Virus record (IMG/VR): IMGVR_UViG_3300044701_003953
Span: 1-64,000 of that record
Length of the DNA stretch: 64,000 nt
Reading direction: 5' to 3' (one strand)
In this document: positions 52,478 to 62,367 of the stretch, piece after piece
How positions within the stretch are numbered: the stretch's first letter is position 1
How the letters are laid out: every line of letters starts with the position of its first letter
Program-made: the position numbers and the translations under genes
The notes under the pieces: generated by a model
The model's database searches: none
Seen by the model: only the letters and a program-made list of their open reading frames with translations
Told to the model about the DNA's origin: nothing

Positions 52478-54760
52478 TTACATTAGGTCTCGCATCATTT
52501 CCTGCGCAACACGAGCACGCTCTATTTCGGCTTTGGTTTCGTCTTGCTTGGTCAAGAACTGCTCAAACAAGGCAATCATGCGATTTTGAGCGTCAATCAT
52601 TGGTGCTGTTCCTTCGCCTACTATAGAGACCTGACCCGATTCAACACGATTGCGGCCTTCTTTGAGTTGCAGTAAGGTCTCACCAAAGCCCTTCATTATT
52701 TCATTAACTTGGGAACGGCCGGCTTCGGATTGTTCGAGTTCTCGGATCTTAGTAGTGGCAGAATTTACATAATCGACCATGGCTTTGCCAAAGTCTCCAC
52801 TGGTGTTGATTCCGTCGGCTACGCTGTTGCGTGTGGTGCTAGTGATCAGCATAGCGGCTCTGCTAAGTTTGTCATACCAGTCAGATTCAAACTGTATAGG
52901 TATCTTATTGTTTTCTAGTGGTACAATCGCTTCAGTTCCATGCATAGTGAGATTGGGCTTATAGCCCGACTGGGGGCCCGACAACACCGCACCCCCGGCA
53001 GCAGCCACATTTTGTCCTTCGACCTCGACTCCGTTACCTAGATCGATTACGCCGGGGCTTTTTTCTGCGGCAGCTTTTTTCTCAGCAGCGATCTCGGCTT
53101 CGGTCTTGGGAATGTCTATGCCTACTTTACGGAATGCTTCGACCATTCCTTGCAGGGCTGTGCTCAGCATGTCGCTGTACTTGGGCAAGGCTTTAGTGGC
53201 GATGTTTTCTACTGCCACGCTGAACTTCATGGCAGCATCGGTGGCTTTGGCAAATCCTTGTGTGGCTTCATCCTGTGTCCCTGCCATGTTTTCGGCCGCG
53301 GCGCGACTCTTATCGGTGTCGCCATAGAATCTTGCTGCGGCATCGTTTGCCATATTTGAATACTCAGCAACAGCGCCCCCGGCTTTTGCTAATATTACTG
53401 CTGTGTCGGCCGCGGCTGCGGCACCACCTGCTTTGTTGAGTCGTCTCTGTTCTTCACCAATGGATTTGACATTGTTTAAAGTTTGATCTTGTAGTTGAGA
53501 TGCTGTTACATTTTGATCTTTAACTCCTGAATACATGGCCTGCAAGGTCTTGTCAAATTCTTTGTTAGTAGCACGCATCAGTGCTCCACCAGCATTAGTC
53601 ACTGCGGTGCCTCCGCTGGCAAAATATTCTAGCACACTTTGTTGCATGCTCTTTGGCACTGATGCATAGGCTTGCATGAACTTCTCGCGTTCGTTGTCAC
53701 TCATGTTAGCCATCAAGGAGGCACGCATACTTTCTTTGCGTGCTTCTTCCATTTTCTTTTTAGCATCTTCACCAGTGATATCAGACAGCACTTTGAGATC
53801 GGCTGCGTACTTACGAGTGCCGGCGGCAATTTCTTCTCTGCTCATCTTTTCAAGATTGCCAGATGATTTCATGTTGGCCATGTACTGACTCATCACGATA
53901 CCTTGCTCTTCGTAGCTGTAGCCCATGCTCAGCATTTCATCTCGGAGTGTTTTTCCACTGCGGCCGGTCATTGTGCTGGCCGATTGCATGCTACTTCCAA
54001 TACGCTGTGCGGCTTCGCCTACGGTCAGGCCCATGCCCATTATTGATTCGCGAGAACTCTTAACTACATTGGTAAATGCCTGCAAATTTAGCCCACTGGC
54101 GCCTGATATATTGCGCAACTCAGTGAGACCACCAGCAAAACTGGCCCCCATGGCTGCGAAATTCTTCATTGATTCGGCTGTCTTAGCTAGTTCTTTGGCC
54201 AAGACGTCATTGGCTATCTTGGCCGCAGCCGACAAGGCTTCGATCGCGCCCTCAGCAGCACCTTTGAGTCCTTTGAATACTCCACCTACTATCGGAATTT
54301 CTGATCCAAGATCTAACAAGGCACCCGAAGTGGTCTTGGCTGCCCGAGCAGTCATGTCGATGCCGACATTGAGTAAACTGGCCCCAGTGCTTATAGGATC
54401 GGCAGCCACGCGGTCGTGCATTTTAATCAAACCAGCCGCTATACGAGTGGCATTGGCGGCCAAGTTGGTGGTGAAATCTCGTACACTGACTTTCATCTGC
54501 TCCATCTGATTGCGTCGATCGGCGGCTTCTTTGGCTGCCATCAATCGTGCCCGTTCTTCTTCAGTGGTGGCGTTTTTTAATGCTTCTTCAAACTTTTTAG
54601 TGGCTGCGGCTGCCTCTTTGTTGGCTGTGGCCGTAGGGGAACTGGAGTTTTTTGGGTCCATGGCCTTGAGTTGGTCAAGGATTTTCTCCATGACGGATTC
54701 TGAGGCTACTCCCTCAACTTGTACTCGACCTACACCAGGAATGTCAATATTAACGGCCAT
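52478..54760 (-). CDS. Tape-measure-like protein (760 aa)
   Basis: Long Ala/Gly-rich helical protein; C-terminal GAVLSGPQSGY...HGTEAIVPL motif typical of tape-measure proteins. Confidence 0.6.
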   Translation of the reverse strand: MAVNIDIPGVGRVQVEGVASESVMEKILDQLKAMDPKNSSSPTATANKEAAAATKKFEEALKNATTEEERARLMAAKEAADRRNQMEQMKVSVRDFTTNLAANATRIAAGLIKMHDRVAADPISTGASLLNVGIDMTARAAKTTSGALLDLGSEIPIVGGVFKGLKGAAEGAIEALSAAAKIANDVLAKELAKTAESMKNFAAMGASFAGGLTELRNISGASGLNLQAFTNVVKSSRESIMGMGLTVGEAAQRIGSSMQSASTMTGRSGKTLRDEMLSMGYSYEEQGIVMSQYMANMKSSGNLEKMSREEIAAGTRKYAADLKVLSDITGEDAKKKMEEARKESMRASLMANMSDNEREKFMQAYASVPKSMQQSVLEYFASGGTAVTNAGGALMRATNKEFDKTLQAMYSGVKDQNVTASQLQDQTLNNVKSIGEEQRRLNKAGGAAAAADTAVILAKAGGAVAEYSNMANDAAARFYGDTDKSRAAAENMAGTQDEATQGFAKATDAAMKFSVAVENIATKALPKYSDMLSTALQGMVEAFRKVGIDIPKTEAEIAAEKKAAAEKSPGVIDLGNGVEVEGQNVAAAGGAVLSGPQSGYKPNLTMHGTEAIVPLENNKIPIQFESDWYDKLSRAAMLITSTTRNSVADGINTSGDFGKAMVDYVNSATTKIRELEQSEAGRSQVNEIMKGFGETLLQLKEGRNRVESGQVSIVGEGTAPMIDAQNRMIALFEQFLTKQDETKAEIERARVAQEMMRDLM

Positions 54761-54770
54761 TTTTCGCGCT

Positions 54771-54819
54771 TATAAATAATAGTAATCTACTAATAGACTA
54801 CTGGTCTACTGTATTTATA
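54771..54819. promoter_or_regulatory. Face-to-face late promoters (TATAAATA on both strands)
   Basis: TATAAATA at 54771-54778 (+) and tatttata at 54812-54819 (-). Confidence 0.7.
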
Positions 54820-54832
54820 GGATCAAAAAACC

Positions 54833-55654
54833 ATGTCAAATCCCTTAGCCAAACATTTCCGGCAACCTGCCATTTACCTCAAAATACCGTCGGGCGGACG
54901 TTTTTGGCCCGAAGGCAGCATTGAACTCACTGCCACTGGCGAAGTTCCAGTGTTTCCCATGACCATCAAGGACGAGATCGCGCTAAAAACACCCGATGCG
55001 CTCATGAACGGCGAAGGTGTGGTTAACATGATAAAAAGCTGCATTCCTGCCATCAAAGATCCCAAGGACTGCCCCACAGTGGATCTTGATGCTATCTTGA
55101 TAGCCATTAGATTGGCTAGTTATGGACAAGGCATGGATATAAACAGCACCTGCCCGAGCTGTCAGGAAAGCAACGAATCCACTGTCAATCTCACTTCTTT
55201 GTTAGATAATATCAGGATGTCGGGTTTCGTACCCGAAAATATCAATGGCATGACTTTTGAATTTTGTCCGCAGACGTTCCGAGACATCAATCGTGCCAAC
55301 ATGATCGCATTTGAAGAACAAAGGATCCTGGAACTAGTTGGATCAGACCAGATATCCGAACAAGAAAAAAATCGCTTGTTCAAAGAAAGTTTCCAAAAAT
55401 TAACTACCATGAGTCTTGACAGCGTGGTATCATCCATCAAATCCATTACTGTTGACGGAGAGAGCGTCAATGACCCTGGAATGATCCTGGAGTTTTTTGA
55501 CAACTGCGATCGCAAGACCTATGATGCTGTTAAGAAAAAGATCGACGATTACGCGAACGCCAACAAGATTAAACCTATCAAATTGACTTGCGAGCATTGT
55601 AATAAAGATTACGAAACCGATCTCACGTTTGATCAGGCAAATTTTTTCGACTAA
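54833..55654 (+). CDS. Baseplate hub assembly protein (gp26/gp51-like)
   Basis: LPS/IPSGG, FPMTIKDE, two CxxC pairs; divergent from the tape-measure-like gene. Confidence 0.7.
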   Translation: MSNPLAKHFRQPAIYLKIPSGGRFWPEGSIELTATGEVPVFPMTIKDEIALKTPDALMNGEGVVNMIKSCIPAIKDPKDCPTVDLDAILIAIRLASYGQGMDINSTCPSCQESNESTVNLTSLLDNIRMSGFVPENINGMTFEFCPQTFRDINRANMIAFEEQRILELVGSDQISEQEKNRLFKESFQKLTTMSLDSVVSSIKSITVDGESVNDPGMILEFFDNCDRKTYDAVKKKIDDYANANKIKPIKLTCEHCNKDYETDLTFDQANFFD

Positions 55655-55727
55655 GGCTTTTGAATCTACGCTCTGACCAGGAAGTATTAGATTTTTTAGA
55701 TCGCCTGGAAAAAGAAGCAAAAGCCTT
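55642..55727 (+). other. Candidate -1 programmed ribosomal frameshift signal
   Basis: T TTT TTC heptamer in frame at 55642-55648; 9-bp inverted repeat 55653-55661 / 55719-55727. Confidence 0.55.
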
Positions 55728-55881
55728 GAGATCAGAAGCATTGAAACTCTGCTGGTACATGAGAGGTGCTATTAGTTACGACGAAGCTATGCAGTTAAGT
55801 TATGACGACCGAGAGATAATTTCAAAATTAATCGACGACAATCTCGAAACAACTAAAAAATCAGGATTACCATTTTTCTAA
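55660..55881 (+). CDS. Small gp51-like hub-assembly ORF, probably the frameshift extension of the upstream gene
   Basis: TTG start with no clear SD; -1 frame relative to the upstream ORF and open back through the slippery site. Confidence 0.65.
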   Translation: MNLRSDQEVLDFLDRLEKEAKALRSEALKLCWYMRGAISYDEAMQLSYDDREIISKLIDDNLETTKKSGLPFF

Positions 55882-55890
55882 GGAAATAAA

Positions 55891-56625
55891 ATGCGAGTAG
55901 CCATAGTAACACCAACTATTGGGAGTAAAAATCTCAAAAAATGCATAGAAAGCGTGCAGACACAGATCTATACTAAAGTCAAACATTATATCTTTGTTGA
56001 CGGCGCCGACCACGAAGACTCGGTCAATGCCATCATTGAAAATGCTCGTATGTTTGATGTTCCGGTAGCCGTCTCTACATTAGCTGAGAATACTGGAGGC
56101 AATGGATGGTATGGTCATCGAGTATATGCGGCGTGCGGATTTTTAATTGATGCTGATGTAATATGCTACCTCGACGAAGATAACTTCCTTGAACCAAATC
56201 ATGTATTAGACCTAATAACCGTAATGGAAAATCAAGAACTTGATTGGGCGTATTCGTTAAGGAAAATCGTTGGTCCAAGTGACAACATTATCTGTCGTGA
56301 CGAATGCGAAAGTCTCGGAAAATGGCCAACTTATGTGGGAGAGAATGTGTTCCATATCGACACATCTTGCTTCATGGTCAAGCGAGACATCGCTACTACA
56401 ATCGGGCATGCATGGTATTTTCAATGGGGAGCCGACCGTAGATTTTTAGCGGCACTAAAACATTACTTTCCAAAATTTGATACTTCAGGTAGCTACAGCC
56501 TCTGTTATCGATTAGGCGGTAACGAAGGATCTGTGACAGAAGATTTTTTCCACGAAGGCAATCGTATCATGTCTGAACGATATCCATCTGGATTCCCGTG
56601 GGATCGTAGCGCATTAGAATATTAA
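55891..56625 (+). CDS. Glycosyltransferase family 2 (GT-A fold)
   Basis: IVTPTIG, IFVDG, CYLDEDN (DxD-like), IDTSCF. Confidence 0.8.
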   Translation: MRVAIVTPTIGSKNLKKCIESVQTQIYTKVKHYIFVDGADHEDSVNAIIENARMFDVPVAVSTLAENTGGNGWYGHRVYAACGFLIDADVICYLDEDNFLEPNHVLDLITVMENQELDWAYSLRKIVGPSDNIICRDECESLGKWPTYVGENVFHIDTSCFMVKRDIATTIGHAWYFQWGADRRFLAALKHYFPKFDTSGSYSLCYRLGGNEGSVTEDFFHEGNRIMSERYPSGFPWDRSALEY

Positions 56626-56629
56626 AAGA

Positions 56630-56651
56630 AAACCGCCCCATAGGGCGGTTT
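56630..56651. terminator. Bidirectional terminator between GT2 and amt
   Basis: aaaccgccc-cata-gggcggttt flanked by A and T tracts. Confidence 0.8.
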
Positions 56652-56672
56652 GTTTTTAGTCGAAAAGAACTA

Positions 56673-57896
56673 CTATTTGACTGATTGACGGAACTCAGGA
56701 TAAGCGATGAGTCCACACTCTTCCATGTCAGAACCTTCGTGTTCCTCTTTGGGAGAGACACGCAAGCCCATGACAGCTTTGATGATATACCAAACGATCA
56801 AGCTAGTGATGAACACCCAAGCGAAAATCACGGCAGCACCGTAGGCCTGGGTCAGGAACGATCCGGCTTTGTTGGTCAATGGCACTGCTAACAGTCCCCA
56901 TAGTCCAGCTACACCGTGTACTGAGATAGCACCAACTGGGTCGTCGATTTTGAAAATACGATCTAAAGTCAGGATGGATGCGTAGCAGATCAAACCACCG
57001 ATAGCACCGATTGCCGTAGAGGCGATGGCAGTGCCTGTGAGTGGTTCAGCAGTGATTGACACCAATCCAGCCAAAGCACCGTTTAGCGCCATGGTGATAT
57101 CTGACTTGCCTGTAAACAGTTTACCAGCGACTAATGCCGCTAACAAACCACCCACAGCAGCCATGTTGGTGTTGACGAAGATCTGTGCCACAGCGTTGGC
57201 GTCAGCGAACGTGCTCATCTTCAGTTGTGAGCCACCGTTGAAACCAAACCAACCAAACCACAGGATCCATGTGCCCAGGGCCACCAGTGTGATGTTTGAA
57301 CCTTGGATAGCACGTGGCTTACCATTGGGTCCATACTTGCCTTTTCTAGCACCCAGCAGGATCACACCTGCAAGGGCAGCGGCAGCACCGGCCATGTGTA
57401 CCACGCCTGAACCTGCGAAGTCCAGGAAGCCAGCAGCGTCAAGAGCGCCTTTGCCCCACTTCCAGAAACCTTCCACTGGATAGATGAAGCCAGTCATCAC
57501 TACTGCGAACAACAGGAAGCTCCACAGTTTCATGCGCTCGGCCACTGCTCCCGACACGATGCTCATGGCAGTTGCCACGAACACTACCTGAAACCAGAAG
57601 TCCGACAGTTTGCTGTAGTAAGCGTCGGCAGCGGGTTTGGCATGATCGCCTGCGACCAGGAAATCAAAGCCCGGGATCCACGAACCTTTGGCTCCGCCGT
57701 ACATGATGTTGTAGCCTACGAGTAGGAACATCAAACAAGCGATGCCGTAGAGCGCAAAGTTTTTAGTGATGATCTCTGAGACGTTCTTGGTGCGGACCAT
57801 ACCTGCTTCCAGCATGGTGAAACCTGCGCCCATGAACATGACCATGGCGCCCATGACTAGGAAGTAAAACGTATCTAAGCTATATGCTAGTTCCAT
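56673..57896 (-). CDS. amtB: Ammonium transporter (Amt family)
   Basis: AGFTMLEAG, DFAGSGVVH and ISVHGVAG (twin His), WFGWFGFNGGS, NGALAGLVSIT, IDDPVGA; start trimmed to MELAYSLDT. Confidence 0.93.
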   Translation of the reverse strand: MELAYSLDTFYFLVMGAMVMFMGAGFTMLEAGMVRTKNVSEIITKNFALYGIACLMFLLVGYNIMYGGAKGSWIPGFDFLVAGDHAKPAADAYYSKLSDFWFQVVFVATAMSIVSGAVAERMKLWSFLLFAVVMTGFIYPVEGFWKWGKGALDAAGFLDFAGSGVVHMAGAAAALAGVILLGARKGKYGPNGKPRAIQGSNITLVALGTWILWFGWFGFNGGSQLKMSTFADANAVAQIFVNTNMAAVGGLLAALVAGKLFTGKSDITMALNGALAGLVSITAEPLTGTAIASTAIGAIGGLICYASILTLDRIFKIDDPVGAISVHGVAGLWGLLAVPLTNKAGSFLTQAYGAAVIFAWVFITSLIVWYIIKAVMGLRVSPKEEHEGSDMEECGLIAYPEFRQSVK

Positions 57897-57897
57897 T

Positions 57898-58939
<1,042 letters not shown>

Positions 58940-59096
58940 AGTTGAATTACCTTTCTGCTGATACTCTTGATCAGCGTTGATGTCCAGGGTACTCCTGACC
59001 CTTGACACTAATATATATATAGCAGAGCACAATATCAGTGTGTGTTTTGTAGTATTTTTGTCATGGACATATAGATTTATGTCGTTAGCGACGGAC

Positions 59097-59126
59097 AATA
59101 AAAAACCGCTGCCAAAGACAGCGGTT
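59097..59126 (-). terminator. Terminator after the 64-aa gene
   Basis: Minus aaccgctg-tctttgg-cagcggtt followed by a T tract. Confidence 0.75.
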
Positions 59127-59146
59127 CTAGTCCAAGATACGCGAGA

Positions 59147-59341
59147 TTACTTCTTAGCGTCAGCTTTCTTTTCAGACTTAGCGTCAGCTTTCTTTTCAGA
59201 CTTAGCGTCAGCTTTCTTTTCTTCTTTTTTGGCTTCTGCTTTAGCAGGAGCGGCAGCAGGAGCTGCGGGTGCTTTGGCCGCATCGGCAGCAAACACCGAT
59301 GTAGCAATACCCATCATCAGGGCGGCAACTACGTTTTTCAT
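59147..59341 (-). CDS. Small secreted Lys/Ala-rich protein (acid-shock-protein-like)
   Basis: Signal peptide MKNVVAALMMGIATSVFA; KKADAKSE repeats. Confidence 0.7.
   Translation of the reverse strand: MKNVVAALMMGIATSVFAADAAKAPAAPAAAPAKAEAKKEEKKADAKSEKKADAKSEKKADAKK
59153..59221. repeat. 24-bp tandem repeat, about 2.9 copies
   Basis: cttagcgtcagctttcttttcaga repeated exactly. Confidence 0.9.
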
Positions 59342-59454
59342 TTTGAATTTCCTTTAAAAGAAACTACTCACGTGGTGTAGTGAGACCATCTCACTACTGT
59401 AAATATTTACGCTTAAGATTTTACGCCCAAAAAGAAACCGTCCAATTTGACGAA

Positions 59455-60456
59455 TCAGATTATCTCTACGAGGTTCTCGCGGAATATCTTCCAGCACGAT
59501 TCCCAACTCCACTGTTGGCTAGCTTGTTCAACTCGGTCTCTGGGATAGCCCAAGCAGATACGGGCAGATTCTGTGAGATCTTCGCTCATGTGCCCTGTGA
59601 TGCCGTTTTCCAAGATATCAATGGGGCCAGGTACAGGATAGGCTGCCACCGGAGTGCCCATAGCCAATGCTTCAATGATCACTATACCAAAAGTATCAGC
59701 ACGACTGGCAAACACAAACACATCGGCGTTGGCATAGTAGCGTGCTAGATCCGTACCACGCAAGGCTCCCACAAACTCGATGCTGGGATAGCGAGATTCA
59801 AGTTCTTGACGGTAAGGACCGTCGCCAACCACTATCTTCCTGGCACCTGGTATGTCGATCTCGCAGAAATCATCAAGACCTTTTTCTCGAGACACTCGGC
59901 CCACGCTCAACAGAACAGGTGGTCCCGATTCCTTGGATCGCATGCGATGATCAAAGATGTTGCGATCCACACCGCGTGTCCAGGCTCGGATGTCGCCGCG
60001 GAAGCCATGCTCTTTTAATTCTCTCACCATAGTGTCGGTTGTTGTAAGCACACGACCCGAATGCTTGTGGAACCAACGCAGATAAGCATAAGTGATCCAA
60101 GCAGGAACACCGTAGATCTTTTTCAAGAACTCGGGGAATTTGGTATGGTAGGAAGTGTTGTAGCGATAGAAGTGGCTGTCTAACCACCACCGCGCCGCGA
60201 AGCCAATTGGGCCTTCCGTAGCGATGTGTACATAGTTCGGATCAATCTCTTGGATCTTGTCACCAATGCCCTTGGGCCAACTAAGCCGAACTTCAGGATA
60301 ACCAGGAGCGCCACGATTAGGGAACTGCCGGGGATCAATATAAAAGATATCGTAGCCGTCGCGACGAGCATGTATTTCCAGATTCTGGAAAGTAGTGACC
60401 ACACCGTTGATCTGCGCAGGGTCATTGTCGGTTATGATGAGGATTTTTTTTCGCAT
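59455..60456 (-). CDS. GT-B family 4 glycosyltransferase, Agt-like (diacylglycerol glycosyltransferase)
   Basis: QINGVVTT, HIATEGPIG, YHTKFPEF, WTRGVD, VGRVSREK, DTFGIVIIEALAMGTPV; directly behind plcP. Confidence 0.85.
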   Translation of the reverse strand: MRKKILIITDNDPAQINGVVTTFQNLEIHARRDGYDIFYIDPRQFPNRGAPGYPEVRLSWPKGIGDKIQEIDPNYVHIATEGPIGFAARWWLDSHFYRYNTSYHTKFPEFLKKIYGVPAWITYAYLRWFHKHSGRVLTTTDTMVRELKEHGFRGDIRAWTRGVDRNIFDHRMRSKESGPPVLLSVGRVSREKGLDDFCEIDIPGARKIVVGDGPYRQELESRYPSIEFVGALRGTDLARYYANADVFVFASRADTFGIVIIEALAMGTPVAAYPVPGPIDILENGITGHMSEDLTESARICLGYPRDRVEQASQQWSWESCWKIFRENLVEII

Positions 60457-61917: not shown

Positions 61918-62367
61918 TTACTCGCTGATGATATTTTTAAGTTTGCCCTTGATGTGGGAGCCATGTACACGGACTTGTATGTGTCCGTTATAGTATTCGT
62001 TGGATTCTAAGACTTGGTGTCGGAATTGTTCTCTTGCTTCGATGTAACTGCATTCGGCCTTGCTGTAACAGTAATAGAGTATCTCCCTGGTAAAGTTTTC
62101 GGGACCTAGCGTTTCTACATCTCGGTTTAGTTCGTCGTTTGAGCCATAATAAGTCTGCCAGTCTGAATCGATTTTTGATTTGATGCGTTTTTTCTTTTTA
62201 GTGCCATTCTTCAGTTTAACAGTTCGATAAGTGGTTTTTGAGAATTTTGCCAGTTTTTTGCCTATGTATTTCCTACCTGATACTCGATTCGTGATGAGAT
62301 AGACGAAGCCTACACAATCGTCGGGCAAAGATTCTACGGGTGAGTTCTCGAAAAGCCACATGGACAT
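61918..62367 (-). CDS. Single-domain GIY-YIG endonuclease (Seg-like)
   Basis: GFVYLITN...KYIGKK, YYGS, conserved E (YIEAREQ) and YYN. Confidence 0.8.
   Translation of the reverse strand: MSMWLFENSPVESLPDDCVGFVYLITNRVSGRKYIGKKLAKFSKTTYRTVKLKNGTKKKKRIKSKIDSDWQTYYGSNDELNRDVETLGPENFTREILYYCYSKAECSYIEAREQFRHQVLESNEYYNGHIQVRVHGSHIKGKLKNIISE

Follow-up and report, generated by a model that had tools for sequence, protein, structure and literature searches.

Does a gp26-family baseplate-hub gene of a freshwater giant phage direct the synthesis of a second, longer protein by programmed -1 ribosomal frameshifting? The question was raised by a first-pass annotation of a 64,000-nucleotide stretch of DNA (positions 1 to 64,000 of a 207.5-kb IMG/VR virus record, 59% complete; referred to here as the window). 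It predicted that two adjacent ORFs, labelled gp26-like and gp51-like, are fused by such a shift next to the tape-measure gene, and inferred that this T4-like clade uses a recoded hub chaperone of the lambda G/GT style. To evaluate this, we first examined the locus itself and then compared it with its relatives, including cultured phages such as RaK2, PA5oct and Atu_ph07. Our results indicate that the gene carries all the sequence hallmarks of a programmed -1 frameshift in the window and across its clade. The features considered below are as follows.

52478 to 54760, minus strand: divergent neighbour encoding a 760-AA tape-measure-like structural protein (identity inferred; context, not part of the recoding signal).
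54771 to 54778, plus strand: TATAAATA, matching the T4 late-promoter consensus, about 55 nt upstream of the ORF1 start; a second copy on the minus strand (54812 to 54819) faces the tape-measure-like gene.
54833 to 55654, plus strand: ORF1, the zero-frame product of 273 AA, a gp26-family baseplate hub / hub-assembly protein.
55642 to 55648, plus strand: slippery heptamer T TTT TTC (X XXY YYZ) in the ORF1 frame, covering the last base of Asn270 and the codons for Phe271 and Phe272.
55649 to 55652, plus strand: spacer between heptamer and stem, 4 nt to the first A-U pair and 6 nt to the first well-conserved G-C pair.
55653 to 55662, plus strand: 5′ arm of the downstream stem (AAGGCTTTTG), which also encodes R-L-L of the -1 frame and contains the TTG taken by gene callers as the ORF2 start.
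55718 to 55727, plus strand: 3′ arm of the stem (CAAAAGCCTT); the 55-nt loop holds further local pairings (ccagg/cctgg).
55648 to 55881, plus strand: -1-frame coding part read after the slip, 77 codons plus stop.

The observation made in the first-pass annotation proved correct. ORF1 ends with GCA AAT TTT TTC GAC TAA, with the stop at 55652–55654, and the heptamer lies in the ORF1 frame. ORF2 (55660–55881, 73 AA from a TTG start) is in the -1 frame relative to ORF1 (55660 − 54833 = 827 = 3n+2). The -1 frame is open from three codons before the heptamer through to 55881 and reads FFRLRLLNLR from 55642. The inverted repeat, given previously as 9 bp, is a perfect 10-bp stem and forms the outer helix of the minimum-free-energy fold. 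In the window alone this fold is not exceptional (z = -1.58), and the signal rises far above chance only when relatives are compared. Two independent assemblies from different freshwater samples reproduce positions 55300–55950 with no differences, so the T6 run is not an assembly error.

We next asked what the two ORFs encode. ORF1 is a member of PF12322 (T4_baseplate, the gp26 family; E = 4.3e-17, 63 bits against a cut-off of 24.5), matched over profile positions 15–218 of 219, that is, right up to the FF motif at the profile end. It also matches phrog_150, baseplate hub (2.8e-22), and a profile of ORF1 homologues aligns to T4 gp26 with 87% probability in hhalign. ORF1 carries four conserved Cys residues (C107, C110, C253, C256). 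Its AF2 model has a pLDDT of 85.5, with residues 268–273 below 50, consistent with a disordered C-terminal tail ending ANFFD. ORF2, in contrast to its earlier labelling, is not gp51-like: the hhalign probability against T4 gp51 was 1.7% for the extension profile (and 4% for the ORF1 profile), and searches of Pfam and PHROG with ORF2 and with 20 extension homologues returned nothing credible. The AF2 model of the extension is all-helical (pLDDT 81), and a search of the PDB with it gave only generic helical matches (E > 4). Foldseek and VIA-align searches with the ORF1 model gave only helical-hairpin matches at a background Z of about 8, and a PDB sequence search with the ORF1 profile gave no hit.

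The divergent upstream gene has no Pfam or PHROG family, and none of its 91 homologues carries an informative name, although some carry SLT or lysozyme-type domains. The same divergent neighbour is found in PA5oct (virion protein by MS), RaK2 (annotated as similar to a tape measure), Serratia BF, Hallingskeid and an environmental contig (L123), and its tape-measure identity is inferred. Only four matches to the TATAAATA motif occur in the 64-kb window, two of them in the 72-nt divergent intergenic region, one facing each gene. This fits co-expressed late genes of the T4 type, though promoter function is inferred from sequence. Further upstream are T4-type portal, protease and major-head genes. 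A single PF12322 gene was found in the virus record, which is incomplete as stated above, and an identical ORF1 protein is on record on a contig of about 340 kb. The cultured relatives are all jumbo myophages: Atu_ph07, Phosso, PA5oct, RaK2/K64-1, 121Q-like coliphages, CBB, GAP32, XacN1, Xoo-sp13, RsoM2USA and Vibrio 2.275.O. The clade concerned is the RaK2/121Q/PA5oct/Atu_ph07/XacN1-type jumbo phages and their many environmental relatives, not T4-like phages in general.

Conservation of the heptamer in orthologues had been named beforehand as a test of the prediction. For this we collected loci purely by ORF1 homology: 32 from IMG/VR, 80 from JGI metagenomes and 12 cultured isolates, plus one uncultured 595-kb phage record (LR756511). 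All 121 analysable loci, which fall into 63 single-linkage clusters at 60% identity and 15 at 50%, have the heptamer in frame at the conserved FF (119 TTTTTTC, 2 TTTTTTT). It is present also in three further isolates, Vibrio 2.275.O, RsoM2USA and Stenotrophomonas RAS14. LR756511 has the heptamer and an open -1 frame, but the extension profile does not match it significantly, and we left its status undecided. The residue before FF varies (N, S, H, A, R, D, Y), yet its codon (AAT/AGT/CAT/GCT/CGT/GAT/TAT) always ends in T, and the first Phe codon is always TTT. In the same ORFs TTT makes up 72.5% of Phe codons and NAT about 60% of N/H/D/S(AGY) codons, so that, if the lineages were independent, the expectation by codon usage is about 0.44 per lineage. 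Elsewhere in these ORFs only 4 of 53 FF dipeptides are T-TTT-TTY. Protein constraint alone does not explain this. The distance from the heptamer to the zero-frame stop varies (3, 5, 6, 8, 12 or 13 codons), while the heptamer does not move.

The downstream ORF is in the -1 frame in every locus and has 71–81 codons in complete loci. The -1 peptides align without gaps starting at the slip site, with FFRxRLL conserved (R3 in 95/98, R5 in 80/98, L/I6 in 97/98 and L7 in 90/98), followed by a WYMRGG motif and a P-F-F end. Codon-position entropies of 1.30, 0.93 and 1.65, the third position being the most variable, show coding constraint in that frame. The -1 frame is closed by a stop no more than 3 codons upstream of the heptamer in 81/121 loci, and 109/121 have no start codon in the open upstream stretch. 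Inside the extension, the first ATG/GTG/TTG lies at codon 4, 7, 9, 15, 17, 18, 21, 28, 32–35 or 39. It is at codon 15 or later in 61 of 113 loci, counting PA5oct, which has none at all. In most lineages, conservation of the -1 peptide begins upstream of any start codon. This explains the state of the public annotations: the ORF is missing in PA5oct, RaK2 and RsoM2USA, is cut to the M of WYMRG in Atu_ph07, and is called from assorted starts elsewhere. None of the twelve GenBank records inspected carries a joined CDS.

To examine whether the downstream stem is a conserved element, we required the 5′ arm to start 1–9 nt after the heptamer. The best contiguous stem had a median length of 9–10 bp in 105 distinct sequences, against about 6 bp in shuffles. 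On an alignment of 98 sequences, the window's stem (columns 18–27 with 86–95) is paired in 73% of cells and has double-sided changes in 8 of 10 pairs (pair 24–89 is UA 37 / CG 35; pair 27–86 is GC 45 / AU 27); it exceeds all slid controls, and 0 of 500 column shuffles reach the observed covariation. Columns 14–17 are unpaired, pairs at columns 18–19 are weak and pairs from column 20 onward are strong, so that the first strongly conserved pairs start 6 nt after the heptamer, which is the usual spacing. Subclades that do not fit this helix have other complementary arms at the same 5′ position: GGATCT / AGATCC; TCCACTA / TAGTGGA, which becomes TCCACCA / TGGTGGA; GCCTCTTAAC / GTTAAGAGGC; and GCCTCC / GGAGGC. 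Both arms are coding, so part of their conservation reflects the protein.

A profile of the extension searched against 1.84 billion representatives found 405 proteins. About 19 of the best 150 are 319–351 AA long, with the extension at the C-terminus and the match starting at profile position 2. These are gp26-family proteins with the Cys motifs, fused in frame with the junction x-N-F-R-x-R-I-L; the codons there are AAT TTT AGA, so no slip is needed. In the two contigs of this sister clade that we examined (L123 and L124), the long gene is preceded by a tandem, Cys-less PF12322 paralogue of about 295 AA, ending NFFTR* or SFFND*. In L123 its FF is encoded by the non-slippery TTC TTT, and the same divergent gene (765 AA) is present. 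The fused architecture is therefore a viable natural protein, joined exactly where the frameshift would join it, and that clade encodes a short-type and a long-type protein as separate genes without recoding. This shows viability of the fusion, not that slippage occurs.

Taken together, the comparative evidence strongly supports ORF1 and ORF2 forming one recoded gene, and we consider it highly likely that the -1 frameshift is real and functional. In this view, most ribosomes translate ORF1 to the TAA at 55652 and make the 273-AA product. A fraction would pause over the stem with tRNA-Phe on TTT and TTC of T TTT TTC, slip one base back in tandem, resume at CGA (55648) and add a 77-residue helical domain. 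The predicted trans-frame product is join(54833..55648, 55648..55881), 349 AA, with the junction ...DQANFF|RLRLLNL... and the expected tryptic junction peptide DYETDLTFDQANFFR. What sequence comparison demonstrates is the heptamer, the open and conserved -1 frame starting at the slip site, the covarying stem and the natural one-piece fusions. That slippage occurs, that it is ribosomal rather than transcriptional, that the fusion is produced, and what it does are inferred; as the case rests on sequence alone, the efficiency could be very low. The interpretation offered in the first-pass annotation is thus supported only in part: its core inference of a frameshift stands, the gp51 label does not, and the G/GT-style role remains an analogy.

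Among the alternatives, the best surviving one, though we consider it very unlikely, is that ORF2 is an ordinary separate gene started independently by translational coupling or reinitiation, the T-run being only the codons of a conserved FF motif. In 52 of 113 loci, the window among them (TTG 55660), a start codon lies within 9 codons of the slip site, Phosso, Atu_ph07 and one sampled locus (L006) have ATGA-type start/stop overlaps, and gene callers do call short ORFs here. Termination–reinitiation could therefore also give a free ORF2 protein in those lineages. Yet, the start position is not conserved, whereas residues upstream of most of these starts are. The window's TTG has only AAGG 3 nt upstream and sits inside the stem. 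T4 and the sister-clade paralogue encode the same FF motif as TTC TTT, the conserved wobble T of a variable preceding residue is not explained by protein constraint, and natural fusions join exactly at this point. Independent initiation may occur in some lineages, but it cannot be the conserved mechanism.

Slightly less likely still is transcriptional slippage, in which RNA polymerase adds an extra U in the T6 run and normal translation gives a nearly identical protein. Homopolymeric T runs are known slippage sites (PMC5009743), and the run is T7 in XacN1, Xoo-sp13 and RAS14 and T9 in RsoM2USA; a search of sequencing runs found the window in DNA metagenome runs only. However, 119/121 loci have exactly six Ts followed by C, which is shorter than the runs of about 8–9 usually needed by bacterial polymerases. 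The run is locked to the X XXY YYZ register in every locus, which transcription would not require, and a covarying stem at 4–6 nt is the canonical ribosomal stimulator. Coincidence or a homopolymer sequencing error, although homopolymers are error-prone and the window's fold is not significant on its own, is effectively refuted by the identical arrangement in 124 independent loci from isolates and metagenomes, by the two concordant assemblies, and by the 120 best of 1850 homologues all being 273–290 AA.

We then compared the locus with known systems. In lambda, gpG and gpGT are made in a 30:1 ratio by a -1 shift; G binds the tape measure, the T domain recruits the tube protein, neither is in the virion, and the ratio matters (PMC5009743). 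Equivalents occur in most long-tailed phages, e.g., P2 E/E+E′ and phage G, whose reported frameshifted chaperone is the classical kind next to its tape measure. As in lambda, an X XXY YYZ heptamer near the 3′ end of a small assembly gene beside the tape-measure(-like) gene would give, as judged at the sequence level only, a short and a C-terminally extended form sharing the N-terminal domain. ORF1, however, had no Pfam or PHROG hit to tail-assembly-chaperone families, and is divergent from the tape-measure-like gene (also in PA5oct, RaK2, BF and Hallingskeid) rather than directly upstream and co-oriented. Its heptamer is T TTT TTC rather than G GGA AAG, and a covarying downstream stem is present. 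Structure prediction of a complex of ORF1 with residues 41–760 of the tape-measure-like protein gave no answer and counts neither for nor against binding. In the PA5oct record the neighbouring gene carries an ESI-MS/MS note and the hub gene does not, which is a weak observation.

T4 gp26 is listed as a hub assembly chaperone whose presence in the particle is disputed (PMC3004832). ORF1 is homologous to it, has the same C-terminal FF motif and likewise lies beside hub and tape-measure genes. T4 gene 26 also yields two nested products (26′ CDS), but through internal initiation, giving a shorter C-terminal fragment, gp26*. The first-pass annotation was right that T4 itself lacks the device: gp26 ends E-F-F-E-L-L, encoded GAG TTC TTT GAG TTA CTA TAA, is followed by gene 25, and has no extension homologue nearby. 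The E. coli dnaX tau/gamma frameshift shares a homopolymer-like heptamer and a stem-loop about 6 nt downstream. The dnaX shift truncates the protein and also uses an upstream SD-like stimulator; here the shift would extend the protein.

By analogy with T4 gp26 and lambda G/GT, we infer that the two forms act together in assembling the hub and tape measure at the start of tail formation, with the extension acting as an adaptor to another tail component. The conserved adjacency to a tape-measure-like gene, the predicted disordered linker at the slip site, the small helical extension and the two-gene solution of the sister clade make a G/GT-like division of labour the best functional guess. It remains tentative, given the absence of homology to tail-assembly-chaperone families and of fold relatives in our searches, and the different gene order.

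Frameshifting of G/GT-type chaperones is established; what is new is such a device, predicted from sequence, in an unrelated assembly protein and conserved across a large clade. Searches of the literature on frameshifting in gp26 and baseplate-hub genes, in jumbo-phage baseplates, in PA5oct and in jumbo-phage tail assembly chaperones, and on PRFect, found no description of this site, most subscription journals being outside their reach. The finding corrects the annotation of many published genomes, several of which miss or truncate ORF2, and supplies a clean set of more than 100 natural variants of a U UUU UUC plus stem signal for frameshift studies. It also offers a testable hypothesis for how hub and tape-measure assembly is organised in contractile tails that lack a classical G/GT pair.

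Frameshifted tail assembly chaperones are regarded as nearly universal in long-tailed phages, with T4-type phages as the textbook exception, and gp26 is a hub protein whose role has stayed unclear (PMC3004832). Our analysis shows that a large, ecologically abundant clade of T4-related jumbo phages has a strictly conserved recoding signal in exactly that gene. A more far-reaching reading, possible but tentative, is that this whole clade (RaK2/121Q, PA5oct, Atu_ph07, XacN1, RsoM2USA and abundant freshwater and marine relatives) makes its gp26-family hub assembly protein in two forms by an unannotated -1 frameshift. This would be an independent, convergent invention of the lambda logic of a short chaperone plus an extended adaptor. 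The same need for two forms would be met in the sister clade by gene duplication with a hard-wired fusion, and perhaps in T4 by the internal start that gives gp26*. If so, it gives a handle on the long-unclear roles of gp26 in hub and tape-measure assembly.

Directly downstream of the hub gene, in the region 55891-60456 of the window, the phage record carries a GT2 glycosyltransferase gene followed by a group of genes on the minus strand, as listed below.

55891-56625, plus strand: GT2 glycosyltransferase
56673-57923, minus strand: AmtB ammonium transporter (PF00909, 1e-100)
57898-58236, minus strand: P-II/GlnK protein
58247-59098, minus strand: Gcw_chp-family outer-membrane protein
59455-60456, minus strand: GT4 glycosyltransferase

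A cellular-type amtB-glnK pair inside a jumbo phage would be an unusual auxiliary metabolic module, unless the contig is chimeric. In addition, a SegE-like GIY-YIG homing endonuclease gene (PF19835, 1.7e-33) was found at positions 61918-62367 of the window, and a similar one lies near the hub genes in L123, a contig of the sister clade.

The 72-nt region between the tape-measure-like gene and ORF1 contains two TATAAATA motifs, which match the T4 late-promoter consensus and face outward, one at 54771-54778 on the plus strand and the other at 54812-54819 on the minus strand. Only four matches to this motif are present in the whole window. Within ORF1 itself (54833-55654), four nearly invariant cysteines at residues 107, 110, 253 and 256 are arranged in two CxxC pairs, which is suggestive of a zinc ribbon in the gp26-family domain.

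In the published genomes of PA5oct (L037:2337-2561), RaK2 (L038:2322-2540), RsoM2USA (L127, from position 1468) and Atu_ph07 (L001:2319-2552), the extension ORF is either unannotated or truncated. The PA5oct copy has no ATG, GTG or TTG at all. RsoM2USA has a nine-T run at the site. A very distant gp26-like ORF of the uncultured 595-kb phage LR756511 (L129, around position 2208) also has GGT TTT TTC TTC in frame, with a -1 frame open for about 75 codons. Yet, the extension profile does not match this locus significantly, so that on present evidence the occurrence of the device in the huge phages can be regarded only as possible.

Two further arrangements concern the production of two forms of the hub protein. 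In the sister clade, represented by contigs L123 (2105-4032) and L124 (820-2744), gp26-family paralogues are found in tandem. The first is a form of about 295 aa that ends NFF-x-x-stop and lacks the cysteines found in ORF1; in L123, where the DNA was read, its FF codons are TTC TTT. The second is a form of about 345 aa with the extension fused in frame. This arrangement appears to be a gene-duplication alternative to the frameshift. T4 gene 26 (L042:3803-4429, the T4 locus), in turn, is annotated with two nested products, gp26 and the internal-start 26′ CDS. This is a different way of making two forms of the same hub protein, and it may be relevant to why two forms are needed.
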